Shown one piece after another: positions 11,268 through 64,000 of a DNA stretch of 64,000 nt. A program made the position numbers and the translations under genes. A model generated the notes under the pieces. It did not search any database, was not told where the DNA came from, and was given only the letters and a program-made list of their open reading frames with translations. The stretch's first letter is position 1, and each line of letters begins with the position of its first letter. The stretch is taken from IMG/VR virus record IMGVR_UViG_3300025161_000004, positions 182,769-246,768 of that record; one strand, written 5' to 3'.

Positions 11268-11339
11268 GCTCGGTTCGTCTAACGGTTAGGACACATGGTT
11301 TTCAACCATGGAATAGGGGTTCGATTCCCCTATCGAGTA
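11268..11339 (+). tRNA. tRNA-Glu(TTC)
   Basis: CATGG-TTTTCAA-CCATG. Confidence 0.9.
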
Positions 11340-11375
11340 CTTTAAATTCTTTTTTCCTGTTAGGAATTAAGATAT

Positions 11376-14236: not shown

Positions 14237-15034
14237 ATGTCCAAAAAGAAGGTAACAAAAACAGTCACAACAACAATTACCGAAGAAATTGTTGAAAATC
14301 AATCAAACAAAACACATATCGTATGTATCCTTGATAGATCTGGATCAATGGGTTTAGTAGCACAAGATGCTATTGGTGGGTTCAACAGATTTTTAAAAGA
14401 TCAAAAAGAAACAGAAGGTGAAGCAACAATGAGCGTAACTTTATTTGATGATGAATATACTCCACTCTATGATGGTAAAGCTATCCCATTAAAAGAAGTT
14501 CCTGAGTTAGATGAGAAGACATTTATACCAAGAGGTGCTACTGCCCTGTATGATGCTATTGGTAGAACGATAGCAAGAACCAAAGAAGATTTTGATAAGA
14601 TGACACCTTCAGAAAAACCAGATAAGGTCTTAGTAGTTATTGTCACTGATGGTAAAGAAAATTCTTCTAAAGAATATAATCAAAATCAAATTAAAGATTT
14701 AATCACTGACTTGAAGAAAAAGAACTGGCAGTTTATTTTCTTGTGTTCGACTGAAGATGCATTAACAAGAGCGAATTCTATTGGAATTGGTTATGGAAAT
14801 GCATTTAAATTTACTAATACATCTGCTGGTAATAATGTTCTTTATACTAGTGTTATCAATAACGCAACTAAGTTATATAGAAGTTTGACTACAAATAATT
14901 CAGAATATGATGTAATATCTAATAATATTATTTCATATGCCATATCTAATGTTAGTCATGTTGATCATATCAACACAAATTCTGAGTCAAATGAATCAAC
15001 AACTAATACTTATAGTACTCCACAAAAAGTATAG
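14237..15034 (+). CDS. vWA-domain protein
   Basis: ILDRSGSM MIDAS motif; TALYDAIG; VIVTDGKEN. Confidence 0.9.
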   Translation: MSKKKVTKTVTTTITEEIVENQSNKTHIVCILDRSGSMGLVAQDAIGGFNRFLKDQKETEGEATMSVTLFDDEYTPLYDGKAIPLKEVPELDEKTFIPRGATALYDAIGRTIARTKEDFDKMTPSEKPDKVLVVIVTDGKENSSKEYNQNQIKDLITDLKKKNWQFIFLCSTEDALTRANSIGIGYGNAFKFTNTSAGNNVLYTSVINNATKLYRSLTTNNSEYDVISNNIISYAISNVSHVDHINTNSESNESTTNTYSTPQKV

Positions 15035-16058: not shown

Positions 16059-17114
16059 GTGAAATTAAATAATGATATATTGAATAAATTGATTGATGAT
16101 GGTTATGTTATGGTTAATAATCATCCATCTCTACCTTTAAGAATTTATAATTATACTCGCAAAACTCAGTTTGAAAAATATTGGAACGAATATACATTAT
16201 TATGTCGTGGACTTATTCTTGATCATGATTTAAATGTTATCGCTAGACCTTTCATGAAGTTCTTCAATTATGAAGAACATAAACCAGAAGAAATTCCAAA
16301 TACAAATTTTGAAGTCTATGAAAAGGTAGATGGTTCATTGGGTATTATATTTAATTATGCAAATGAATGGCATATTGCCACCAGAGGTTCATTTGTATCA
16401 GAACAAGCTATTAGAGCTAAATCAATGCTTAGCAGATATAATATCGATGGTTTAGATTCTGAAAAGACTTATTTGGTTGAAATTATCTATCCAGAAAATC
16501 GTATTGTTGTTGATTATTTTGGTGAAGAAAAATTAGTGTTGTTAGCTGTTGTTGACATTAAAACAGGACATGATATGCCATATTCACATATGAAATATCA
16601 TACCTATATGCGTAAAATAGATTTCCCATTAATTAAATATTATGATGGTATTAATGATATTTTTGAATTAAGCAAACGTAACAATCAAAATGAAGAGGGT
16701 TACGTGTTAAGATATGAAAATGGATTTCGTGTAAAAATTAAATTTGAGAATTATTGTCGTCTACATGCAATCATTACCAATCTATCAACTAAAGATATTT
16801 GGAAATATTTACGTGATGGTAAAGATATTAATGAATTGCTTGATCGCACACCAGATGAATTTGATGATTGGGTAAGAAATGAAATGAAGTCATTAACTGA
16901 CAGGTATTTGGCAATTGAATCTGAAGCAAAATTAATATTTTCTAAAATTTATGTGGATGGTATGTCAAGAAAAGATTTTGCAATGAAAGCATTGAATGAA
17001 AATCATTCACCAATTTTATTTAAGATATTAGAAAATAAACCATATGATAGTATTATATGGAAAATGATTGAACCAAAATATTCAAAAGCATTCTTTAAAG
17101 AAGAAGGTAATTAG
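16059..17114 (+). CDS. rnlA: T4 Rnl1-like RNA ligase
   Basis: CRGLI, ARPFMKFFN, EKVDGS (motif I), ATRGSF, EGYV, RVKIK. Confidence 0.88.
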   Translation: MKLNNDILNKLIDDGYVMVNNHPSLPLRIYNYTRKTQFEKYWNEYTLLCRGLILDHDLNVIARPFMKFFNYEEHKPEEIPNTNFEVYEKVDGSLGIIFNYANEWHIATRGSFVSEQAIRAKSMLSRYNIDGLDSEKTYLVEIIYPENRIVVDYFGEEKLVLLAVVDIKTGHDMPYSHMKYHTYMRKIDFPLIKYYDGINDIFELSKRNNQNEEGYVLRYENGFRVKIKFENYCRLHAIITNLSTKDIWKYLRDGKDINELLDRTPDEFDDWVRNEMKSLTDRYLAIESEAKLIFSKIYVDGMSRKDFAMKALNENHSPILFKILENKPYDSIIWKMIEPKYSKAFFKEEGN

Positions 17115-17517: not shown

Positions 17518-17733
17518 ATGGAATTGAGAAAACTTATAGAAACCACAATAAGAGAATATCTAAATGAAAACAAGATAACGAAAACAGTCTATAAATCAGG
17601 TTCTGATATGGGTAGTAATTATTTCAATATCACATTTTACACTGATTCAAAAGATGTTGCAAAAAAATATGTAGAAAAATTACAAGGAAATAATAAAATA
17701 TATAAAGAACTATATCCTTCAATAATCCATTAG
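17518..17733 (+). CDS. Short, probably truncated protein with shared N-terminal motif
   Basis: MELRKLIETTIREYLNE...FYTDSKDVAKKY. Confidence 0.55.
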   Translation: MELRKLIETTIREYLNENKITKTVYKSGSDMGSNYFNITFYTDSKDVAKKYVEKLQGNNKIYKELYPSIIH

Positions 17734-17837: not shown

Positions 17838-18356
17838 ATGAAATTAAGAAAATTCATAAAAACAACTATACACGAATATTTGAATGAAGACTATTTAAAG
17901 CGTGCTATCAAAAATTATTTGATCGAAGGTAAATATCTTTTTCATTATACATTAACTGATTATTTAGATGATATCAAAACCGAAGGTCTAATACCCAGAA
18001 AGAACCCAAATTCTTATTATAAAGGTGGGTCAAAAGGCGTTTTCTTAACAACATCAAGCTCATTAAATAAAGCAAATTTACCACAATCATTGTATGATGT
18101 AATGGATGATTATTATGAGAATAAGGAAAATTATGATGTTAAACCAATAGTTAGATTATGGATTGATGTTACCAAATTAGATTTAGATAAATTAACATGG
18201 GATGATGATTATATCCTGAATAGATATGGTTGGAACAAAGCGAAAACTGACAAAGAAAAAATAATCGAAAGTTTAGATATATGGGGTTCTGTTGCGTATC
18301 TTGGGACTATACCAAGTAAATTTATAGTAAAATATGATTTTGATTATAAGAATTAA
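17838..18356 (+). CDS. ADP-ribosyltransferase-like fold protein with shared N-terminal motif
   Basis: LFHYT...IKTEGLIP...GVFLTT; MKLRKFIKTTIHEYLNE. Confidence 0.5.
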   Translation: MKLRKFIKTTIHEYLNEDYLKRAIKNYLIEGKYLFHYTLTDYLDDIKTEGLIPRKNPNSYYKGGSKGVFLTTSSSLNKANLPQSLYDVMDDYYENKENYDVKPIVRLWIDVTKLDLDKLTWDDDYILNRYGWNKAKTDKEKIIESLDIWGSVAYLGTIPSKFIVKYDFDYKN

Positions 18357-18889: not shown

Positions 18890-19192
18890 ATGAAATACAT
18901 GGGTAGTAAAAACAGAATAGCTAAGGAAATACTACCAATAATGCTAAAAGAGCGAGGTGGGAGAATTTGGATAGAGCCATTTGTTGGTGGTGGAAACATC
19001 ATTGATAAAGTAGAAGGTGAAAGAATTGGTGCTGATATAAATCCTTATGTGATTGATGCATTAATTACTATTAGAGATTCTGTGATGGATTTACCAAAAA
19101 ATAATAAAGAATTTACTGAAGATGATTACAAACGATTAAGATATAGTGACGATTATAAATACAAAGGTTATGCTGGTTTTGCGTTTTCTTAA
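18890..19192 (+). pseudogene. Truncated Dam/D12-class adenine methyltransferase
   Basis: KYMGSK...IEPFVGGG...DIN present; stops at 100 aa, before the DPPY motif. Confidence 0.75.
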
Positions 19193-19445
19193 TGTAAATA
19201 AAATTGATAGTAAAACATTTTATCAAAAAACAAAACAATATTTTCCTTCTAAAGTTTTAAGTAAAAATCCAAATTCAGCATTGTGGGAATTAATACGTTT
19301 AGATTTTGATTGTGAAATAAAAAAAACATTTCAAAGTAGAGGTTTTGATGGATTGATTATTATTGAAAAGAAAAATAACGAATTATTTGAATGTTATGTG
19401 TTATTCAACACAAACCCAATTGTTGTGTTTTTAAACGGAGGTTAA
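19146..19445 (+). pseudogene. Headless C-terminal gene fragment joined to the Dam remnant
   Basis: Open frame without a good start, ...RGFDGLIII... Confidence 0.4.
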
Positions 19446-19467
19446 AAAATAAAACTAAAATATTATT

Positions 19468-20055
19468 ATGACAAAAGAAGAAATTGACCAATTAGTCAGA
19501 CAAATTTACGAGGAGTATATCTTTGGAGGGTCTGAAACACCTACTTACGGAGTAGATTTTGACAAGAAAGATATTTTGCAGGCACTTGAAATGGTGGTAC
19601 AAAAAACCAACGAATATTGGTCAGGAAAAAGTATTTCTCCAAAACCCCTGCTGACTGGCGGTAGCGGACAGTTACCATTACCTTCCGAAAGGTTTGATGC
19701 GGAGGAATGGCTTGGGGAACAGAAAGACATTTGGAATCATCCACAAGTTACAGATAGAAATAATAAAAATAGCTATGAGGTGGCTGATTTAATGGCTGAA
19801 TTTGCTAATTGGTACTATAACAACAGTAAAGTTACCTTTAACAGTTCTCAGATTGCTGTCGGAATCAACGTAGTAACACAGCAACAAACCAATGTTATGG
19901 GCAGTGTTTTTTTAGTTTATAATCCAAATGGGCACGTTATAGCTGTTTGCAGCAACTATAAAAAAGCAGAAGAAATATTTAGGTCGGAGTTCGGTGACCT
20001 TGATCCATCTATTGGGATTGAAGAAATGGATGTTGATGTTAAACATTGCCCATAA
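19468..20055 (+). CDS. Hypothetical protein, probably a fusion of cassette units
   Basis: Contains an internal GTTATGGGCA site and ends within TGCCCATAAC. Confidence 0.6.
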   Translation: MTKEEIDQLVRQIYEEYIFGGSETPTYGVDFDKKDILQALEMVVQKTNEYWSGKSISPKPLLTGGSGQLPLPSERFDAEEWLGEQKDIWNHPQVTDRNNKNSYEVADLMAEFANWYYNNSKVTFNSSQIAVGINVVTQQQTNVMGSVFLVYNPNGHVIAVCSNYKKAEEIFRSEFGDLDPSIGIEEMDVDVKHCP

Positions 20056-20113
20056 CGGTTACAGCTATATTTAGTGCCGGTTTTAAAAAAACAAAACTTA
20101 ATAAACAGGTAAA

Positions 20114-20398
20114 ATGAAAAACGAAGAACAAAACTCAAATACTCCACAGAACTCAGCATTGAATATAGTTGATGTTAGCGACAGTTTTAAACTTCCTAAC
20201 CAAACTGGAAAGCTAATGTTTAAATTTGATGATGATGAACCACAGGAATGTGCAACAATTTATGACTACGGAAAAGTTACGATAGAATTGCAACAACAAA
20301 AAGAGTTAGACAATAATTTACGGCAAACGACCAACTCAATCGAATTTACTTCCAAAGACGGAAAGAAGTTTAAACTGTTCATAGAGAATTGCCACTAA
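20114..20398 (+). CDS. Cassette-borne hypothetical protein
   Basis: Starts inside an attC-like site (MKNEEQNSNTPQNSALNIVDVSDS); stop lies in CACTAAC. Confidence 0.7.
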   Translation: MKNEEQNSNTPQNSALNIVDVSDSFKLPNQTGKLMFKFDDDEPQECATIYDYGKVTIELQQQKELDNNLRQTTNSIEFTSKDGKKFKLFIENCH

Positions 20399-20480
20399 CT
20401 TCTGTATTAACTCAGATACGATAAAGGATGTTATGAATTATTGAAGCTAACAGTTTTCAGATCTATGTTAGTATACAATT

Positions 20481-20774
20481 TTGTACAAACCTCAAAATTT
20501 AAAATCTATGAAAATTAATTTTTTAAAGACAATTCATCTCTTTGTGGGTAGGTTGTTTTTAACAGAAAAGCCACGTATCGGTAAGTTTCCTTTAGAATTT
20601 AAATTTTCATTCCGAAGAAATGAATGGTATTTATTCCCACAAGGATGGTCTCATTTGCACACAGCAAAAGACGAGGGTACAGATAGAAGATTTGAGTATC
20701 ACTATAAGTACAATTTTTCATGGCTTTTTATTGATCTCGAATGGACACAAAGATTGTGTAATGTTGATTTTTAA
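20481..20774 (+). CDS. Cassette-borne hypothetical protein
   Basis: ORF followed directly by TACCCACAAC. Confidence 0.55.
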   Translation: MYKPQNLKSMKINFLKTIHLFVGRLFLTEKPRIGKFPLEFKFSFRRNEWYLFPQGWSHLHTAKDEGTDRRFEYHYKYNFSWLFIDLEWTQRLCNVDF

Positions 20775-20905
20775 ACTTACCCACAACGGTTTTAAATATA
20801 AGAAGTAAATTTTACTCATAAAATTTGGATAAATGAAAATTTATTTATTATATTTGTTCTTATAATTTATTAAAAAATAATTATACAAATTTAAAAAATA
20901 AAATT

Positions 20906-21094
20906 ATGAAAACATTATTAAGTAGAGTAGAAGAAGAAAGTGTTAATTATCCAACAGCAGAACACGCAGCAATAGACCATTTGAAAATGGCATCTGCACA
21001 TTTATTTGAAGAAACAGAAGGTAGAGACATTGATAATTGTTTATCTGATATTGAAAAAATAATTAAAAAACTTGAAAATAGAATAAACTCATAA
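20906..21094 (+). CDS. Small hypothetical protein
   Basis: ATG after an A-rich leader; TATATTTG upstream. Confidence 0.65.
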   Translation: MKTLLSRVEEESVNYPTAEHAAIDHLKMASAHLFEETEGRDIDNCLSDIEKIIKKLENRINS

Positions 21095-21377
21095 TTTTTT
21101 TTTATTACTTATAACGGTTGGATGTATAAGTGGTCTAAGATTAGAAACGCTTAACTTCACTTAAGCACAACTGTTGATTAGAATTATAAACTTAAACAAC
21201 CAACTAAACATCAGATTACATATATACCATCTTATACACTTTTAAATTTTATATATTATGAGAATATAGGAAAAACTTTAAATCGAAACATTCAGGCTCG
21301 TAGCAGCATTTTGCCTACCTGCTGTTAGATGTCTGTGAAAAATAAATTTAGTGTTGGGCAATTAAACAAATTTTAAA

Positions 21378-21659
21378 ATGAAAGCAGAAAGAAAAAATTA
21401 TTTAACCCTAAAATGGGGAACATTGAAAGAGTATGATTTTAGTAATTCAAAAAAAGGACAAAAGTTGCTAAAAGAGTACAAACGAATTGGAGCATCTTTT
21501 AGTAGAATGTTACAAGAAGACACTCCGAGACAAAAGGAAATTATTTGTGAATTGATAGACCTTTGTGATGGGGATAAAATTTATTTAGAGTGGGATGGAA
21601 AATATGTGTCAAAACAAAAAGCAAAAGACTATGTCCTAAATTATGGTAAAGAAGACTGA
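21378..21659 (+). CDS. Cassette-borne hypothetical protein
   Basis: 93 aa, LTLKWGTLK N-terminal motif. Confidence 0.7.
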   Translation: MKAERKNYLTLKWGTLKEYDFSNSKKGQKLLKEYKRIGASFSRMLQEDTPRQKEIICELIDLCDGDKIYLEWDGKYVSKQKAKDYVLNYGKED

Positions 21660-21893
21660 TACTGTTGATGCGATAAGAAATTTATTTTTTTATTGTATCT
21701 AACGTACAGGTGCGGTGAAGTTCAGATAGAATTTAATTAGAACCACAGACAAAAACAAAAAAGAATATTACAATGAAACTTAATAAGAAGTGATAACGTA
21801 GTATTTCTTATAAAGGTTGATAAGAACTTTTTAAAAATATTTGGTGGGAAATTTAATTCTAAGTATTTATATATAATAAACTATTTATTCTAT

Positions 21894-22202
21894 ATGGAAA
21901 ACGATAAAAAAATAAGGGACTTAGTTAAAACTACTCTTAGAGAGGTTTTGAACGAAAACAAAGATATTGAACCATATTATAATGAAGATTTTAAAGATAA
22001 ATTAAAAAAATTATTAATTGAACTTGGTTATGAGGATATTGAATTTGAAGTGGATGGTGTGTCTTTTCATAATCCCTATGGGGATGATGTGTTAGTGAAT
22101 AAAAAAAGTTCGGTAATATATGATTTCATTGAGAATTATGGTTATGATCCGGATGATTTTATTATAGGAAATTTTAGAATATTTTATCCAACTAATTTTT
22201 AA
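21894..22202 (+). CDS. Acidic protein with shared N-terminal motif
   Basis: MENDKKIRDLVKTTLREVLNE; GTATTTAT upstream. Confidence 0.7.
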   Translation: MENDKKIRDLVKTTLREVLNENKDIEPYYNEDFKDKLKKLLIELGYEDIEFEVDGVSFHNPYGDDVLVNKKSSVIYDFIENYGYDPDDFIIGNFRIFYPTNF

Positions 22203-22328
22203 TTTTTTTTACGAAGAACTATAACTGTAACACGAATGTAGTATTGTGTATAACGGTTAGGGTATTGCTGCCGTGTGGTATTCCTTGCACGTCAGCCGAA
22301 TAAATTACTAATGTTAAATAGAAATACT

Positions 22329-22802
22329 ATGGATGAAAATTTAAGCGTCAGCCCACATGGAAGCAATACCATGTTAGCGGCTGTTACGGTGGGTAGAATT
22401 ACTCCCGAAAATATTACAAGCATTTCAGAAAATGAAGTATTTGTCTTTGGTAGTAATTTGTCTGGAAGGCACGGGAAAGGTGCTGCAAAAACTGCTTTAG
22501 GTTGGGGTGCAAAATGGGGTCAAGCCGCAGGAATACAAGGCAAAACCTACGGAATACCAACCAAAGATGCTTCGATAAAAAGAACGCTCCGAATTGATGA
22601 AATAAAGCCATTTGTAGATGATTTTATTGAATGGGCAAAGCATCACACAGGGAATACTTTTTATGTAACTGAAATAGGCTGTGGTTTGGCTGGATACAAG
22701 CCTAAAGATATTGCTCCACTATTTGCAGAATGTGTCAATTTGAAAAATGTCAAACTGCCACAAAGGTTCTGGCACGAGTTGGTTGGTAGTAATAGCCGCT
22801 AA
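22329..22802 (+). CDS. A1S_2505-family (macro-like) phage protein, cassette-borne
   Basis: VFVFGSNLSGRHGKGAA...TYGIPT...VTEIGCGLAG; start moved to ATG 22329. Confidence 0.8.
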   Translation: MDENLSVSPHGSNTMLAAVTVGRITPENITSISENEVFVFGSNLSGRHGKGAAKTALGWGAKWGQAAGIQGKTYGIPTKDASIKRTLRIDEIKPFVDDFIEWAKHHTGNTFYVTEIGCGLAGYKPKDIAPLFAECVNLKNVKLPQRFWHELVGSNSR

Positions 22803-22994
22803 CGGTTGCAAATATAAAACGTTGCAACATAAATGTTAATTAAATACGACAATTTTTAAAATTTAACATATAATAATAATTGAAACACGACAGCAACGTT
22901 TTTGTTGTTATAAGTTATATTGAAATTTATCTTGATACTAAGCTAAATTTATCCATCCGATAATCAATATATTATAAAATAATTTAAAATTTTC

Positions 22995-23035
22995 TTGACA
23001 AATCTGAATAATTCGTGTACTTTTGACACGAATTA
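22995..23035 (+). promoter_or_regulatory. NAD operon promoter overlapped by a candidate NrtR operator
   Basis: TTGACA at 22995; perfect palindrome TAATTCGTGT-ACTTTTG-ACACGAATTA (23009-23035) containing the TACTTTTG -7 box. Confidence 0.75.
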
Positions 23036-23048
23036 ATAGTATTTATAA

Positions 23049-23504
23049 GTGAATGGTAAAATAAAAACTGTTTTTTTTGACCAGATTAATTTGTGTATAA
23101 ATTACAATAATATGATGACATTTAGGGATATAGTTCAAATTATTGAAAACATAACCTATAAAAGGGGGTGGTCAATTTTAGTGAATGTGGATGGTCTTGA
23201 AAAAAGACCATATCTTCAAGTAGAATTTAATGCTGAAGATGCTGAAACTGGGAATGTGGAAAAGCAGAGATGTAGAAAATGGATGTTGTCATATCACATG
23301 ACCACTACTGAAATTGTGTATACCGCATTAAAAGCTATTCAAGCTGCAGAAGACCATGAAACAAGAGAATTCTTCAGATATAAGAATGTTCGTATTGTCA
23401 ATCCACACTTTTCGGTGGATGATATTGTTAAAATGGTGAATCAAAAGAAATTAAACGAAGAATCAAGAATCTTAATCCCTTCATGTGGGACTGATAAAAA
23501 TTAA
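23049..23504 (+). CDS. Hypothetical protein, first gene of the NAD operon
   Basis: RKWMLSYHMTTTEIV.TA...HE.RE.F; true start probably a later ATG. Confidence 0.7.
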   Translation: MNGKIKTVFFDQINLCINYNNMMTFRDIVQIIENITYKRGWSILVNVDGLEKRPYLQVEFNAEDAETGNVEKQRCRKWMLSYHMTTTEIVYTALKAIQAAEDHETREFFRYKNVRIVNPHFSVDDIVKMVNQKKLNEESRILIPSCGTDKN

Positions 23505-23533
23505 ACTTTTATGAATAAAAAATCACAGATAAT

Positions 23534-24466
23534 ATGGAGGAAGTTAAAAAAAAATATGATATAGGGGTAATCATAGGACGTTTTCAAGTTCACGAATTAC
23601 ACGATGCACATAAGGGAATGATAGAAGAGGTTCTATCAAGACATGAAAAGGTAATTTTGTTTTTAGGGGTATCTCCTACACTTTCTACAAAAAGAAATCC
23701 ACTTGATTTCTTATCAAGAAAAGTAATGTTTGAAGAAGAATATGGTAATCGCATTTCTGTGATCTTACCATTATACGATAAAAAATCTGACTATGTTTGG
23801 TCTAAACAAGTCGATACTAAAATTCGTGAAGTATTTCCGCTTGGCTCTGTTGTTCTTTATGGGTCAAGAGATTCGTTTATCCCACATTATAAGGGAGAAT
23901 TTGATGTGATTGAATTAGTACCAAGTTCTTTAGTATCCGCAACTGAAATCAGAGAATCTGTATCTAAAAGAGTTGAGCGTAAAAAAGAATTTCGTGCAGG
24001 TGTTATTTATGCATGTTATAATACATTTGATTTGGTTCATCCTGTAGTCGATGTTGCAATTATGAATGATGATGAAACAATGGTTCTTCTTGGTAGAAAG
24101 AAAGATGAAACAGAATTTCGATTTATTGGTGGATTTGTTGATGTTACAGATGAATCTTTGGAACAGACAGTAAGACGTGAAGTATATGAGGAAACTGGAT
24201 TAGAAATTGACAATATTCAATACATCGCATCAATAAAGGTAAATGATTGGAGATATCGTTTAGATAAAGAACGTTCTGTTATGACATCATTTTTTAAGGC
24301 AAAGAAGATTTTTGGTGGTGGTTCTGAACAAGCCAAAGATGATATTGCTGAAGTAAAATGGTTTGACATTAATAAAATTAATGGAACTCAAATTGTTAGT
24401 GAGCATTTGAAACTACTCAACATCCTAAAAAATTTACTAAAAACCCAAAAGCTAAATAATTCTTAA
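23534..24466 (+). CDS. nadM: Bifunctional NMN adenylyltransferase / Nudix ADP-ribose pyrophosphatase
   Basis: GRFQVHELHDAH...RNPL...SAT, then Nudix box GG...EQTVRREVYEETG. Confidence 0.9.
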   Translation: MEEVKKKYDIGVIIGRFQVHELHDAHKGMIEEVLSRHEKVILFLGVSPTLSTKRNPLDFLSRKVMFEEEYGNRISVILPLYDKKSDYVWSKQVDTKIREVFPLGSVVLYGSRDSFIPHYKGEFDVIELVPSSLVSATEIRESVSKRVERKKEFRAGVIYACYNTFDLVHPVVDVAIMNDDETMVLLGRKKDETEFRFIGGFVDVTDESLEQTVRREVYEETGLEIDNIQYIASIKVNDWRYRLDKERSVMTSFFKAKKIFGGGSEQAKDDIAEVKWFDINKINGTQIVSEHLKLLNILKNLLKTQKLNNS

Positions 24467-24483
24467 CTAAAAATTATTAATTT

Positions 24484-25941
24484 ATGAAAACAATTAATTT
24501 AATCCCGAATTTAATTCTAAGAACTGATAGCTATAAACTTAGTCACTGGAAACAATATCCGAAAGGTATGACTAAAGTATATTCATATCTTGAAAGTAGA
24601 GGTGGTGCATATCCTGCAACACTATTCTTTGGATTGCAATATTTCTTAAAGCAATTAGAGGGTGTTGTGATTACCATGAAAGACGTTGAAGACGCTGATA
24701 AATTTTCAAAAGCACACTTTGGGAGTGATATCTTTAATAAAGAAGGTTGGAAATATATTGTTAAAGTACATGGTGGCAAACTCCCAATTCGTATTAAAGC
24801 GGTGAAAGAGGGTACATTAGTACCAACACGTAATGTTTTGATGACTATTGAAAATACTGATGAAAATTGTTTCTGGTTAACTAATGCAATGGAAACAATG
24901 CTAATGCGTATTTGGTATCCGATTACAATTGCAACAAATAGTTTTTATGCAAAACAAATGATAGCAAAATATTTAAAAACCAGTGCAAATGATTTAAATT
25001 CATTACCTTTTAAACTTCATGATTTCGGATATCGTGGTGTGTCAAGTGAAGAAAGTGCTGGTGTTGGTGGTATGGCTCACTTGGTAAATTTCATGGGTAC
25101 AGATACTCTTGCAGCAATTGTATATTCTAATGAATATTATAATGCTGGTGGTGTAAATGCATTTTCAGTTCCTGCATCTGAACACTCTGTGGCTTGTTCA
25201 TTTGGAAAAGAAAATGAAGAAGAATATTTCTTGAACATGCTTAATCAGTATCCTACAGGTATTGTATCGATAGTATCTGACACATATGATGTATTCAATT
25301 TTGTTGATTCTATGTCGAAGAAACATAAAAAGAAAATTCTTGAACGTCAAGGTACTACAGTATTTCGTCCTGATTCTGGGGATCCGATTGATGTTAATGT
25401 TAAATTAATCAACATCCTTTGGAATGTGTTTGGTGATGTAGGTTCTATTACTAAAACAGGACATAAATTATTACCACCACAAGTACGACTTATTCAAGGT
25501 GATGGTATTGATTTGAAAACATTAGATCAAATTCTTAAAACTGTTACTGACTTAGGATTCTCAGCTGAAAATTGGGTGTTCGGTTCTGGTGGTGGGCTTC
25601 TTCAAAAATTTGATCGTGATACATTGAAGTTTGCGATTAAAGCATCCTATGGTGAGAGAATAGTTGATGGAAATCGTCTAGAATTTGATATTCAGAAAGA
25701 CCCTATCACTTCATCTGGTAAGAAAAGTAAAGCAGGTAAATTGAAATTGGTAAAATCTCAATTAGATGGTGAGTTTTTCACTGTAACAAGTGAGCACCCA
25801 CATTTCGAAAAATTTAAAGATGAATTAGAGGTTGTATTTGAAAACGGTGAGATTAAGAGAACTCAGCAATTCGAAGAGATAAGAGTTCTTGCAAATTCAT
25901 TTATAAAAATTAATTCAGATGTAGAATATCAGAATCACTGA
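24484..25941 (+). CDS. nadV: Nicotinamide phosphoribosyltransferase
   Basis: TDSYKLSHW, LHDFGYRG, PASEHS, VSDTYD, RPDSG, QGDG, GSGGGLLQ. Confidence 0.95.
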   Translation: MKTINLIPNLILRTDSYKLSHWKQYPKGMTKVYSYLESRGGAYPATLFFGLQYFLKQLEGVVITMKDVEDADKFSKAHFGSDIFNKEGWKYIVKVHGGKLPIRIKAVKEGTLVPTRNVLMTIENTDENCFWLTNAMETMLMRIWYPITIATNSFYAKQMIAKYLKTSANDLNSLPFKLHDFGYRGVSSEESAGVGGMAHLVNFMGTDTLAAIVYSNEYYNAGGVNAFSVPASEHSVACSFGKENEEEYFLNMLNQYPTGIVSIVSDTYDVFNFVDSMSKKHKKKILERQGTTVFRPDSGDPIDVNVKLINILWNVFGDVGSITKTGHKLLPPQVRLIQGDGIDLKTLDQILKTVTDLGFSAENWVFGSGGGLLQKFDRDTLKFAIKASYGERIVDGNRLEFDIQKDPITSSGKKSKAGKLKLVKSQLDGEFFTVTSEHPHFEKFKDELEVVFENGEIKRTQQFEEIRVLANSFIKINSDVEYQNH

Positions 25942-25994
25942 ATTATAAAATAAGATAGTTCAATACTTAAATTTACAATATTAATAGAAGCAAT

Positions 25995-26924
25995 ATGATA
26001 AAAATTTTCCCACAATCGAATAGTCTTAAATTTACTGAGCAACTGGTAAATTCTAATTCTGTATTGGAAACTGGTAGAGCAAATTACTATAGTTTGGGTA
26101 AAATACATAAGACCAAATTTGCTAATGGTGAGATTACTGTTGTATTTGAAGAATCGGTTCGAAATGAATCGATTGTGATTGTATCACAACCAAAAACATA
26201 TGAAGATATTTTCGAACTTCTTGAGACAATTGATGCAGCAAGAAGATCTTCAGCGAAAGAAATCATCGGAGTGATACCATCATTACCACATTCAAGACAA
26301 GAAAGAAGAGAGAATGGTGTAAGAACAACAATCTCGGCAAGATTAATTGCTGATATATTACAAGTTGCTGGTCTTGACAGATTAATAACTATGGATGTTC
26401 ATACTACCGCCATTGAAGGATTTTATAAAATACCATTTGATAATATTGATCCTTTTGATAGTATTCTAAAAAAAATAAAAACATTGAATTTGCAAAACCC
26501 TACAATTGTATCACCAGATTTTGGCGGTATGAAACGAGCAAAAAAATATGCTAATAAGTTAGGGTATAATATAGCATTCATTAGTAAGGAAAGATTAAAA
26601 GCAAATGAAGTTGAAAGTATGACATTAATTGGATCAGTAAAAGATTCGGATGTCATTATTGTTGATGATATGATTGATACTGGTGCTACTATATTGAAAG
26701 GGCTTGATTTGCTTAAAGAGAATGGTGCAAAGAACTTTTATGTATTTGCTACACATGGTGTATTTTCTAATGACGCTATTAATAAGTTTGCAACTAATCA
26801 TAATTTTCCACATGTTTACATAACAAATACAATACCTGTAGATAATCATAGTAATTTTGTTAACATTAAAGAAATTAATGTTATTTCCGAATTTGATAAG
26901 GCATTAAGAAAAATTTTTATATAA
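25995..26924 (+). CDS. prs: Ribose-phosphate pyrophosphokinase family protein
   Basis: FANGE, SRQERR, DVH, SPDFGG, IVDDMIDTGAT, THGVFS. Confidence 0.9.
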   Translation: MIKIFPQSNSLKFTEQLVNSNSVLETGRANYYSLGKIHKTKFANGEITVVFEESVRNESIVIVSQPKTYEDIFELLETIDAARRSSAKEIIGVIPSLPHSRQERRENGVRTTISARLIADILQVAGLDRLITMDVHTTAIEGFYKIPFDNIDPFDSILKKIKTLNLQNPTIVSPDFGGMKRAKKYANKLGYNIAFISKERLKANEVESMTLIGSVKDSDVIIVDDMIDTGATILKGLDLLKENGAKNFYVFATHGVFSNDAINKFATNHNFPHVYITNTIPVDNHSNFVNIKEINVISEFDKALRKIFI

Positions 26925-43039: not shown

Positions 43040-43110
43040 GCCCGAATGGTGTAAATAGTAGCATACTTGCTACGCAGCAAGAGGTGTTGGTTCAAGTCCA
43101 ACTTCGGGCC
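43040..43110 (+). pseudogene. Atypical tRNA with a 6-nt anticodon loop (Arg ACG-like)
   Basis: CTTGC-TACGCA-GCAAG; D loop lacks GG; acceptor and T stems intact. Confidence 0.5.
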
Positions 43111-47690: not shown

Positions 47691-47764
47691 GTAACCAAGA
47701 TGATTAAATTTTCGTATAATACAACAAATACGATCCATTAGCATAGTGGTTAATGTAGGACTCT
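47691..47764 (+). repeat. Second copy of the direct repeat (intact tRNA 5' half)
   Basis: See 45964-46036. Confidence 0.85.
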
Positions 47765-47803
47765 CTAAAAGTCTTGAGGTGGGTTCGATTCCCACATGGA
47801 TCA
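47732..47803 (+). tRNA. Amber suppressor tRNA(CTA)
   Basis: GATCCAT/ATGGATC acceptor; GGACT-CTCTAAA-AGTCT; GTGGG-TTCGATT-CCCAC. Confidence 0.88.
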
Positions 47804-47932
47804 CAAAAATTTATTAAATATGATCTTAAAGATATATCACAACACCAATCGGAAGGTTGAATATGAACTGTGGGCTGTGGTGTTTTTATTTAAAAATCAT
47901 AAAAAATAACTTAACAATTTGAAACTTTTTAA

Positions 47933-63615: not shown

Positions 63616-64000
63616 AGTTGCTGTATTTAAGTGTTTGTGTTTAACTGATGCAAATATGAAGAGTATTTTTTAATTACAAAATATTTTTTTAATTTTTTTT
63701 TTTCAAAAAAATGAAATTTAGAATTGTTCTAAATAATACAGAATGTAGGGTAGGTTGGAGTACACTCGGTACTGCATTATGATGCATTACAGGTACAAAG
63801 GTTTTAATAAAAAATGAGAATTCCAAATTTTTAACTAAAAAAATTTTACGGTGAAATTTAATAATTTGCCGTAAAAATTTGGATAATTCGAACCTTTGTT
63901 CTATATTTGTTTTATCGGTTCGAGTATTGCCGATGGTGGGGCGTTAATGCACTACCGCATCATCAAGGTACAAATGTAAATAGTAGTGCAAATTGTTCAA

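Follow-up and report, generated by a model that had tools for sequence, protein, structure and literature searches.

The small-gene array and its hairpins

The window, by which we mean the whole stretch of 64,000 nucleotides analyzed here, carries at positions 19894-22910 about seven units of small genes; between them lie copies, some reduced to remnants, of a single hairpin that we call element E (Table 1). The motif AACGGTT is found five times on the + strand (20054, 20785, 21113, 22252, and 22801), each time at or just past a stop codon. Counting both strands, the expectation for the whole window is about 4.7 occurrences, and five within 2.75 kb correspond to a Poisson P of 8e-8. The AACGGTT/hairpin pattern is real and not a product of chance. 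We searched for E with a covariance model (CM) in the window, in phage contigs, and in bacterial genomes. Four significant sites were detected in the window, all inside one 2.9-kb segment, and no recombinase was found in the phage record. Most E copies in the window are decayed. Possibly most of the array is a fossil: E1, E2, E3, and E5 have drifted toward AT or are missing a box, and the E1 hairpin is thermodynamically unstable.

A first-pass annotation, made from the sequence alone, had described GTT/AAC bounds at stop codons, imperfect palindromes of 120-140 nt, gene starts lying inside the palindromes, and decayed units. The bounds are confirmed by the five AACGGTT motifs and the palindromes by elements such as E4, and several units of the window are indeed decayed. 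The claim on gene starts held only in part: the ATG of gene D overlaps TGTTA, and the start of ORF 20114 falls in the E1 loop, its true position being uncertain.

Decayed tRNA genes were considered and rejected: TAACGGTTAGG also occurs in the D-arm of tRNA-Glu (11268-11340), but the region gives no tRNA or Rfam signal. Only tRNAs pass the Rfam gathering threshold, and nothing relevant appears at an E-value of 10 or below in 19400-23600. Lone E copies are also present elsewhere in the phage genome.

Table 1. Units, genes, and E elements of the array, with one further E copy at the contig end
Feature	Position	Strand	Remarks
First unit, 5' end (GTTA + 12 nt)	19894..19909	+	Inside ORF 19468-20055; no intact hairpin before it
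52-aa ORF, first unit	19897..20055	+	In frame with 142 upstream codons; TAA stop is the TAA of TAAC; no family match
E1, complete hairpin, TAAC to GTTA	20053..20177	+	CM 85.5 bits; AT-rich, thermodynamically weak
94-aa cassette ORF	20114..20398	+	Alternative start 20216; TAA stop within TAAC at 20396; no family match
38-nt TAAC...GTTA mini-hairpin, possibly a collapsed element	20396..20433	+	Read from the sequence; not detected by CM
97-aa cassette ORF	20481..20774	+	No family match
E2 remnant: CAACGGTT and AT-rich stem, without GTTA box	20784..20862	+	Motif and inverted repeat; CM 15.9 bits, E = 2.3, not significant alone
62-aa cassette ORF	20906..21094	+	From ORF list
E3, left box and stem intact, right box TTTA instead of GTTA	21112..21234	+	CM 53.5 bits
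93-aa cassette ORF	21378..21659	+	From ORF list
Left-arm-only remnant (TAAC, GTACAG, stem with GAAG motif)	21700..21731	+	Read from the sequence; no right arm found; not detected by CM
102-aa cassette ORF	21894..22202	+	N-terminal motif shared with ORFs 17518 and 17838; weak PF25734 match
E4, family-typical hairpin	22251..22376	+	CM 89.4 bits; 18-nt arm at 89% complementarity
Gene D, 143 aa, phrog_2072, function unknown	22371..22802	+	ATG overlaps TGTTA; TAA stop is part of TAAC
Gene D unit, terminal repeats	5' 22373..22387; 3' 22789..22803 ending in TAAC	+	14/15 complementary; mismatch is the G.T wobble
E5, last array element, AT-rich	22800..22910	+	CM 44.1 bits; 10-bp stem on both strands
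Further E copy, TATC for TAAC, cut by contig end	63913..64000	+	CM 27.8 bits, model positions 1-89

Element E is a covarying and strand-asymmetric hairpin

Element E consists of a TAAC box, a 6-nt spacer, an 18-bp covarying stem, a loop, the return stem, 1-3 nt, and a GTTA box. Its usual length of about 125 nt is nearly fixed across genomes, and the TAAC and GTTA boxes are invariant in the family; copies are also dispersed and decaying, with lengths from 49 to 189 nt. The invariant sequence amounts to only about 5 nt per end. Across 84 copies, 94.7% of the stem cells are paired, compared to 56% in shuffles. The stems covary (17 of the 18 pairs) while the sequence itself is not kept, and one G.T pair is invariant in 84/84 copies. 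Folding thermodynamics do not single out E1 or E5, and E1 as DNA folds no better than shuffles (z = +1.5). The support for E is covariation, not folding energy.

On the + strand we counted 149 G.T pairs versus 37 A.C, 29 of the latter in one column, and DNA folding yields the long hairpin of E4 on the + strand and not on the - strand. No extrahelical bases of the attC type were seen in E, which has instead conserved G.T wobbles and one position-specific C.A mismatch. The orientation of E relative to the genes flips between phages and bacteria: the coding strand is the stable hairpin strand in 25/26 phage intervals, and the non-coding strand is the stable one in 26/32 intervals of bacterial arrays.

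These data bear on the possibility that E acts as an RNA, for instance as a processing site, terminator, or stabilizer between cistrons. In favor of it, G.U-type wobbles are conserved on the strand transcribed in phages, E starts at stop codons and ends near start codons in the window, and runs labeled RNA-Seq hold a gene-plus-E unit, with DNA carry-over not excluded. However, the stable strand is coding in phages but non-coding in bacterial arrays, no Rfam family matches, and an RNA role leaves the mobility at the boxes, described below, unexplained. We consider this explanation very unlikely.

Complementary cassette ends

In each unit, the two ends are complementary to each other over 11-15 nt. 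In the first unit, 19894-19909 and 20041-20056 are complementary at 15/16 positions, and the mismatch is the G.T wobble that the family has at position 7 after GTTA. Two such pairs had been listed at 10/10 in the first-pass annotation; both are confirmed, and they extend to 15/16 and, for the gene D unit, 14/15. Over 71 neighboring element pairs from the window, phage loci, and bacterial arrays, the complementarity across a cassette averages 8.97/14, compared to 4.36/14 for the two flanks of one element and 4.27 (sd 1.88) for random pairs. Homologous gene D units found elsewhere have different end sequences and retain the complementarity.

E arrays in Bacteroidota lie next to an Xer-like recombinase

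The CM found E in 73 of the 151 sampled Bacteroidota genomes. On bacterial chromosomes it forms arrays of 10 to more than 25 copies, usually with an Xer/IntI-like tyrosine recombinase at a distance of 0.3-5 kb, as seen in at least 11 genomes. Among the 16 genomes with a close homologue of this recombinase, 15 contain E (p = 9e-5), and no such homologue was found in about half of the E-positive bacterial genomes. The array recombinases match the IntI model TIGR02249 only over positions 3-180 and 239-315 and align end to end with XerA, and thus are without the IntI-specific insertion. They have an N-terminal extension of about 70 aa, and the 3' end of their gene faces the array. In the arrays that we read, the cassettes carry unrelated accessory genes, such as toxin-antitoxin pairs, defense-like ATPases, and a beta-lactamase-fold gene. 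In a Flavobacterium isolate, the unit nearest the recombinase is a gene D cassette. An array is located at 206-228 kb of contig C12 in Flavobacterium sp. TSSA_36, and WP_438065630 is one array recombinase, with a homologue in L035. At another locus, L035, an IS91 transposase and a second Xer-like recombinase adjoin an E-like copy.

One sampled genome encodes a bona fide IntI (429.7 bits for a cut-off of 265). It was set aside as uninformative: the gene is at the end of its contig, and E is absent from the nearest 11 kb.

E-bearing phages without a recombinase

E was also detected by CM in many unrelated phage contigs. The absence of an integrase, noted in the first-pass annotation, held: we found no tyrosine recombinase in the record of this jumbo phage (246.8 kb, 79% complete), PF00589 was unmatched in six phage records, and a complete 34-kb E-bearing phage encodes none. 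Two phage records searched for homologues of the bacterial array recombinase (G000 and G001) have none. Besides gene D, no protein is common to all five phage records compared, and the annotated phage collection holds no close relative of the phage. In Polaribacter phage P12002L, E gives one weak hit of 28 bits (14502-14625), away from the recombination sites reported for this phage.

The gene D cassette is gained, lost, and relocated at the boxes

E4 and gene D form a mobile unit of 549 bp (22251-22799). In a contig from run X3, which represents a near-identical phage from another metagenome, exactly 22251-22799 is absent, and TAACGGTT fits both sides of the joint. The same unit is found at 99% identity or more in other contexts in wastewater, and runs X6, X13, X16, and X17 contain it in other contexts with 0-3 mismatches. 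A contig from a Saprospiraceae bin carries a gene D unit at 93% protein identity, with homology stopping at TAAC. Homology to locus L034 runs from TAAC at 22251 to TAACGGT at 22806, the E4 stems being identical and the loop diverged. Loci L004-L009 have no DNA in common except the gene D unit, whose bounds are GTTA and TAAC, and in run X16 E4 alone is common to different neighbors. The homology junctions thus fall at both ends of E, at TAAC in some comparisons and at GTTA in others. Gene-plus-E units move as one piece with junctions exact at the boxes, the exact crossover base remaining unresolved. These sequence comparisons, without any experiment, show that one phage cassette has been gained, lost, and moved at E boxes in natural samples; this cassette is the best documented, and its hairpin moves along on the upstream side of the gene. 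The X3 deletion on its own could possibly come from slippage at an 8-bp direct repeat. No cassette circles were seen, the sequencing runs having been examined as contigs only.

The X3 variant also has an unrelated microhomology deletion (20265-22190). A joint in run X4 (19774->23057) was discarded, one side having only 21 letters and unknown letters lying between. The runs labeled RNA-Seq mentioned above contain the E4-gene D unit, with the same reservation about DNA carry-over.

Two further explanations were weighed against these junctions. In the first, E would be a selfish hairpin repeat of the REP, MITE, or IS-end kind that a transposase (HUH or other) has spread, and the cassettes merely the DNA between insertions. 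This would fit the dispersed, decaying copies of 49-189 nt, the lone copies elsewhere in the phage genome, the IS91 transposase and second Xer-like recombinase of L035, and the solitary E4 of run X16. However, repeat insertion explains neither the complementary, covarying unit ends nor the joint movement of gene-plus-E units, and no HUH gene is consistently near E. The synteny with a tyrosine recombinase is consistent. We regard a selfish repeat as very improbable.

In the second, E would be a regulatory module whose units are swapped by homologous recombination, like the PeSLs of T4-type phages, reported as composite promoter-terminator motifs (PMC2839356, PMC4122927). The small-ORF units in a hyperplastic region, the conserved AT-rich stretch between GTTA and the start codon at some loci, and the microhomology deletion of the X3 variant speak for it. 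PeSL cassettes resemble E cassettes in that small accessory ORFs of hyperplastic regions are flanked by repeated stem-loops and shuffled between relatives. They differ from E in its length of about 125 nt, its covarying structure, its exact junctions, and its recombinase-linked array system in hosts. The repeat of PeSL cassettes is made up of an early promoter and a short stem-loop; E keeps no single orientation to the genes, which flips between phages and bacteria. Homologous exchange at E is disfavored because some 5 invariant nt per end are too short. Stem covariation, exact junctions at the boxes, and bacterial chromosomal arrays beside a recombinase all argue against a regulatory module, which we likewise hold to be very unlikely.

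A proposed integron-like system of Bacteroidota

We propose that this region represents a small cassette array, decayed for the most part, and that the integron-like system to which it belongs is native to Bacteroidota, a reading that we consider likely (probability of roughly 0.7). The analysis shows the structure and covariation of E, that the ends of cassettes are complementary, that units are gained, lost, and relocated at the boxes, and that recombinase and arrays are syntenic. The role of the neighboring recombinase as catalyst, the single-stranded DNA substrate, and the circle intermediate are inferred, with nothing experimental behind them.

In the proposed mechanism, a cassette would comprise one gene or a few genes and one E site of about 125 nt. 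Single-stranded E (+ strand) would fold with an R box of about 11-15 bp ending in TAAC and paired with GTTA, an asymmetric internal loop of 6 nt opposite 1-3 nt, and an 18-bp L stem with the invariant G.T wobble, followed by a loop of about 60 nt. A tyrosine recombinase would exchange strands at the hairpin foot, within TAAC or GTTA. Excised cassettes would be circular, with an R box completed by their two ends, and would integrate again at a different E site. The phage, having no recombinase, would therefore carry the equivalent of a CALIN (an attC cluster lacking an integrase), served in trans. The enzyme is likely, by inference, a host Xer-like recombinase, which would act on the phage array during infection. 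A CALIN is defined by at least two attC sites within a few kb and no integron integrase nearby, and the name would fit the phage array only if E is counted as attC.

Several observations count against the integron-like reading. Junctions occur at both ends of E, which a single-site, single-strand integron reaction does not predict. Moreover, the phage lacks a recombinase, gene D is the sole protein common to the five phage records compared, and about half of the E-positive bacterial genomes showed no close homologue of the array recombinase. The possible slippage origin of the X3 deletion and the decay of most copies in the window also weigh against it.

The integron-like array claimed in the first-pass annotation is supported, with corrections concerning the site, which is not a canonical attC, the enzyme, and the gene strand. 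The annotation had proposed a search for a tyrosine recombinase elsewhere; one lies beside the bacterial arrays and is absent from the phage. It had also named two outcomes that would refute it, neither of which was borne out: units are gained, lost, and moved at TAAC/GTTA junctions, and similar sites recur elsewhere in this genome, among unrelated phages, and among the Bacteroidota genomes counted above. The array-linked recombinase is Xer-like and without the IntI insertion, and we therefore call the system integron-like rather than a canonical integron.

The site known from integrons, attC, is an imperfect palindrome of 57-141 nt in which R''(..AAC) and R'(GTT..) boxes enclose the inner L boxes and a loop of variable size; its extrahelical bases and roughly symmetric, unpaired 5/6-nt central spacer set the strand choice. 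E meets this layout with a palindrome bearing AAC/GTT boxes, an 18-bp stem, and about 125 nt. It fails on extrahelical bases and spacer symmetry (6 nt vs 1-3 nt). A complete integron requires an intI with the IntI insertion beside the array, which was found neither in the phage record nor in the bacterial arrays. Complete integrons also have an attI site and a Pc promoter next to the integrase, and the window contains no integrase. As expected of cassettes, the 5' end is complementary to the unit's own 3' R'' box, and units are gained and lost at the site.

E arrays share with integrons mostly single, unrelated accessory genes between imperfect palindromes with AAC...GTT boxes. In both, the hairpins are strand-biased and consist of an R box and an L stem with an unpaired spacer between them; the R box is completed by the ends of the cassettes; one end of the array is occupied by a tyrosine recombinase; and clusters without an integrase occur. 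The bacterial E arrays also resemble integrons in that their genes are opposite the stable (bottom-like) strand. E arrays differ in their recombinase, which lacks the IntI-specific insertion, is closest to XerA, and has its 3' end toward the array; the comparison took in integrons in which integrase and cassettes have the same orientation. Further differences are the spacers of 6 and 1-3 nt, the fixed G.T wobbles with no extrahelical bases seen, an R box of 11-15 bp, the nearly fixed length, the junctions at both site ends, and, in phages, genes on the stable strand.

The closest alternative is that these are classical attC sites recombined by a true IntI, the region being a plain CALIN as already reported in virulent phages, including a phage of the Bacteroidota host Polaribacter (Qi et al., 2023; PMC9892861). 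It is favored by the AAC/GTT triplets, the R/L box layout, the complementary cassette ends, a site length within the attC range, the bona fide IntI of one sampled Bacteroidota genome, and the published CALINs themselves, which are likewise recombination-site clusters without integrase in lytic phage genomes. Those CALINs, however, were found with canonical attC models and are recombined by IntI1, and E is not clearly present in P12002L, a published CALIN phage whose only E hit is weak and in a different place. The spacers, the fixed wobbles without visible extrahelical bases, and the array recombinases without the IntI insertion also argue against it. Finally, integrons are almost absent from Bacteroidetes in surveys made with IntegronFinder (PMC9024848), as opposed to E in about half of the sampled genomes. 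We judge classical attC sites unlikely.

Xer-dependent elements offer a further comparison with the integron-like system. The attP of CTX phage is a folded single-stranded hairpin that mimics a two-arm site with an unpaired center, and the host supplies Xer. CTX attP and pdif modules thus share with our proposal a host-supplied Xer-type tyrosine recombinase. In contrast, E sites have one orientation, with the hairpin between units, and are found not at dif but next to a dedicated recombinase whose N terminus is extended by about 70 aa.

A bolder reading, which we hold to be slightly less likely than not, is that E and its Xer-like recombinase make up a second, undescribed integron-type system common in Bacteroidota, with a recombinase without the IntI insertion and a differently marked hairpin. 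Virulent or jumbo phages would exchange cassettes with the chromosomes of bacteria and would borrow the host enzyme to sample accessory genes, and the stable-strand genes would be a phage-adapted class. We found no description of this hairpin family in the literature searched, Cury et al. (2016) included, which is no proof of absence.

Standard-tool surveys find integrons nearly absent from Bacteroidetes (PMC9024848); if a parallel system recombines at E, then a major phylum holds a large, overlooked pool of mobile cassettes. The IntI insertion is reported to be essential for integron function (PMC8138268), and a hairpin-site system without it would therefore bear on the origin of integrases from Xer-like enzymes. 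For phage biology, E suggests a concrete route by which unrelated phages and hosts may trade single genes, a route backed by one cassette present, absent, and relocated in natural samples.

A hairpin element follows the small genes of the array

Five copies of the motif AACGGTT lie on the + strand between positions 20054 and 22801, all of them at or just past a stop codon, which in two cases is supplied by the TAAC itself. About 4.7 copies are expected over the whole window on both strands, and five within 2.75 kb correspond to a Poisson P of 8e-8. An imperfect palindrome begins at each copy, the clearest (E4) having arms of 18 nt with 89% complementarity. Gene D (22371-22802, phrog_2072, 143 aa, unknown function), which follows E4, has homologues in 432 phage records from many host genera. 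Retrieving homologues of its protein led to unrelated phage contigs (30-46% G+C) with the same type of element after their genes. This element, named E, starts with TAAC and a roughly 6-nt spacer, whose first letter is mostly G; an approximately 18-bp stem then encloses a loop of some 60 nt, and 1-3 nt separate its return arm from a closing (T)GTTA. Its lengths cluster tightly near 125 nt.

An alignment of 22 copies showed compensatory changes in 16 of the 18 consensus stem pairs. The covariance model built from it (R1) gave 68 matches in the loci collected by then, nearly all on the gene D strand. When 84 copies were aligned to the model, 94.7% of the stem cells were paired versus 56% after shuffling, both-sided changes were seen in 17/18 stem pairs and one G.T pair was invariant (84/84). 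Pairing is somewhat inflated here because this alignment was fitted to the model; a MAFFT alignment agrees. On the + strand, G.T pairs exceed A.C pairs (149 versus 37, 29 of the latter in a single column), and therefore the + strand is the one selected to fold. DNA folding of individual copies gave a long hairpin on the + strand only for E4, a stability no better than that of shuffles for E1 and a 10-bp stem on both strands for E5.

Copies and remnants of element E in the window
Feature	Position	Strand	Remark
E1	20053-20177	+	Significant covariance-model match
E remnant (E2)	20784-20862	+	
E3	21112-21234	+	Significant match; right box is TTTA
E4	22251-22376	+	Significant match
E5	22800-22910	+	Significant match
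Left-arm-only remnant	at 21700	+	
TAAC...GTTA mini-hairpin	20396-20433	+	38 nt, classed among remnants
Copy truncated by contig end	from 63913	+	

The array region comprises about 7 units, of which only E4 with gene D looks fresh. Three more copies of E are found elsewhere in the phage genome. Copies lie at both ends of the phage contig (G000:C1:80-128 on the - strand, and 63913-64000 at the 3' end of the window, cut off), and the assembly may possibly have broken at this repeat.

The ends of each cassette are complementary

The first-pass annotation had claimed complementarity across single genes. This held, and the complementary runs are longer than it first stated: 19894-19909 pairs with 20041-20056 at 15/16 positions and 22373-22387 with 22789-22803 at 14/15. 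We then compared the 14 nt after the GTTA of one E with the 14 nt before the TAAC of the next in 71 neighbouring pairs. The mean match across a cassette was 8.97/14, versus 4.36 for the flanks of a single element and 4.27 (sd 1.88) for random pairs. Usually the first six positions pair, position 7 is a G.T wobble and three or four more pairs follow. Gene D homologues in the window and in the homologous loci L004, L005/L007/L009 and L035 differ in their end sequences while each pair is still complementary, so it is the complementarity as such that has been kept. Were the unit circular, its two ends would lengthen the base of the hairpin to roughly 15 bp.

The gene D cassette moves as a unit

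In loci L004-L009, the gene D unit (89-95% identity) is the sole DNA in common within about 10 kb on either side, and the alignments stop at (CT)GTTA and TAAC. The window is homologous to L034, a contig of 2.6 kb in a Saprospiraceae genome bin, from the TAAC at 22251 to the TAACGGT at 22806; the stems are identical to those of E4 and the loop has diverged.

A contig from a hot-spring metagenome (run X3) joins 19453-20264 to 22191-22250 and then to 22800-23400 with 0-1 differences. This near-identical phage lacks exactly 22251-22799, and eight letters (TAACGGTT) match both sides of the joint. From the same phage 20265-22190 (1,926 bp) is missing as well; that joint is a 4-nt microhomology inside two ORFs, unrelated to E, so ordinary illegitimate deletion also removes DNA from this region. 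In wastewater runs X6, X13, X16 and X17, 22250-22807 is present with 0-3 differences in other contexts, and contigs end or branch at 22251/2, 22374/5 (inside GTTA) and 22803-6. Both ends of E are thus junctions in natural populations. The hairpin that moves with gene D in the window is the one upstream of it.

In the phage locus L009 (9044-10405), the gene D cassette consists of a short N-terminal gene fragment, a 268-aa ORF that carries NUMOD3 and endonuclease I domains, and a full gene copy, an arrangement that resembles a homing-endonuclease insertion with partial duplication.

Arrays of E adjoin a tyrosine recombinase in Bacteroidota

No tyrosine recombinase was found in six E-bearing phage records, including a complete 34-kb genome, and gene D was the only protein common to all five records compared. 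In an evenly drawn sample of Bacteroidota genomes, E was present in 73/151 (R1, E <= 1e-5). Several of these, such as Flavobacterium sp. TSSA_36 (G022) and G133, carry arrays of 10 to >25 copies spaced by 0.5-3 kb. The bacterial cassettes encode unrelated accessory proteins, including an Xre/RES pair, a Gp49-like protein, AAA_15/21 ATPases, a beta-lactamase fold, nucleases and several DUFs. At least 11 genomes encode a tyrosine recombinase of 346-366 aa past the end of the array, at a distance of 0.3-5 kb; its gene is oriented opposite to E, its 3' end facing the array. A close homologue of this recombinase (E <= 1e-108) occurs in 16 genomes, 15 of which have element E, versus 58 of the 135 others (p = 9e-5).

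The array recombinase, which is extended at its N terminus by about 70 residues, scores just below the XerA/integron-integrase model. It matches the integron-integrase model TIGR02249 only at positions 3-180 and 239-315. XerA structures (4a8e, 5hxy) align with it from end to end, but IntI4 (2a3v) in two pieces. The recombinase therefore lacks the IntI-defining insertion.

Flavobacterium sp. RSP15, an isolate, has a gene D cassette (ends complementary at 14/15 positions) next to the array recombinase, and in a second array of its genome the ends of a 3.8-kb multi-gene unit are complementary at 14/15 positions. On the contig bearing the gene D cassette, a 278-aa Xer-like recombinase and an IS91-family transposase are directly preceded by an E-like copy whose boxes read CAAC and GTTG (L035, 1066-3308).

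The longest ORF between elements lies opposite the strand of the stable hairpin in 26/32 intervals of bacterial arrays, whereas it lies on that strand in 25/26 intervals of phage arrays, a flip that argues against an RNA function. The bacterial arrays fit the geometry of integrons, gene then site with the stable hairpin on the bottom strand; by analogy, the crossover would map to the AAC of the bottom strand's 5' arm. The phage cassettes form the reverse-oriented class.

A probable integron-like cassette system

The integron-like cassette array proposed in the first-pass annotation held as the best reading, with a recombinase lacking the IntI insertion. We consider it likely (about 0.7) that E arrays are an integron-like cassette system of Bacteroidota and that this phage carries an integrase-less, largely decayed offshoot. 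A host recombinase acting in trans on the phage array, a single-stranded DNA substrate and circular intermediates are all inferred. Two observations do not match a simple integron reaction: E has junctions at each end, and many E-positive genomes have no close recombinase homologue.

Clusters of attC sites lacking an integrase (CALINs) are known in virulent phages, including a Polaribacter phage (PMC9892861), although that phage is not clearly an E carrier. According to IntegronFinder 2.0, Bacteroidetes have only In0 elements and one complete integron (PMC9024848). No description of the E hairpin family was found in the literature searched, and we see a reasonable, if slightly less than even, chance that E marks an undescribed system.

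Genomic surroundings of the phage array

The virus record is linear (246,768 bp, 28.5% G+C, estimated 79% complete), the window being its final 64 kb, and has no close relatives in the annotated phage collection. Among the 35 tRNA genes of the window, one (47732-47804) has the anticodon CTA and would read the TAG stop codon; the anticodon of a tRNA-like gene at 43040-43110 could not be assigned. Directly after the array region lie genes for a NUDIX-domain protein, a nicotinamide phosphoribosyltransferase and a PRPP synthetase (cluster 23534-26924). Upstream are a T4 Rnl1-type RNA ligase gene (16059-17114) and, just before the array, a 100-aa ORF (18890-19192) matching the D12 (Dam-type) adenine methyltransferase profile PF02086 (E = 5e-10) over positions 1-77 of 253 only, apparently a truncated methyltransferase gene. 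Three ORFs (17518-17733, 17838-18356 and 21894-22202) have in common an N-terminal motif of about 20 residues (..LRK.I.TTI.EYLNEN..) followed by unrelated C-terminal parts, and one of them weakly matches PF25734.
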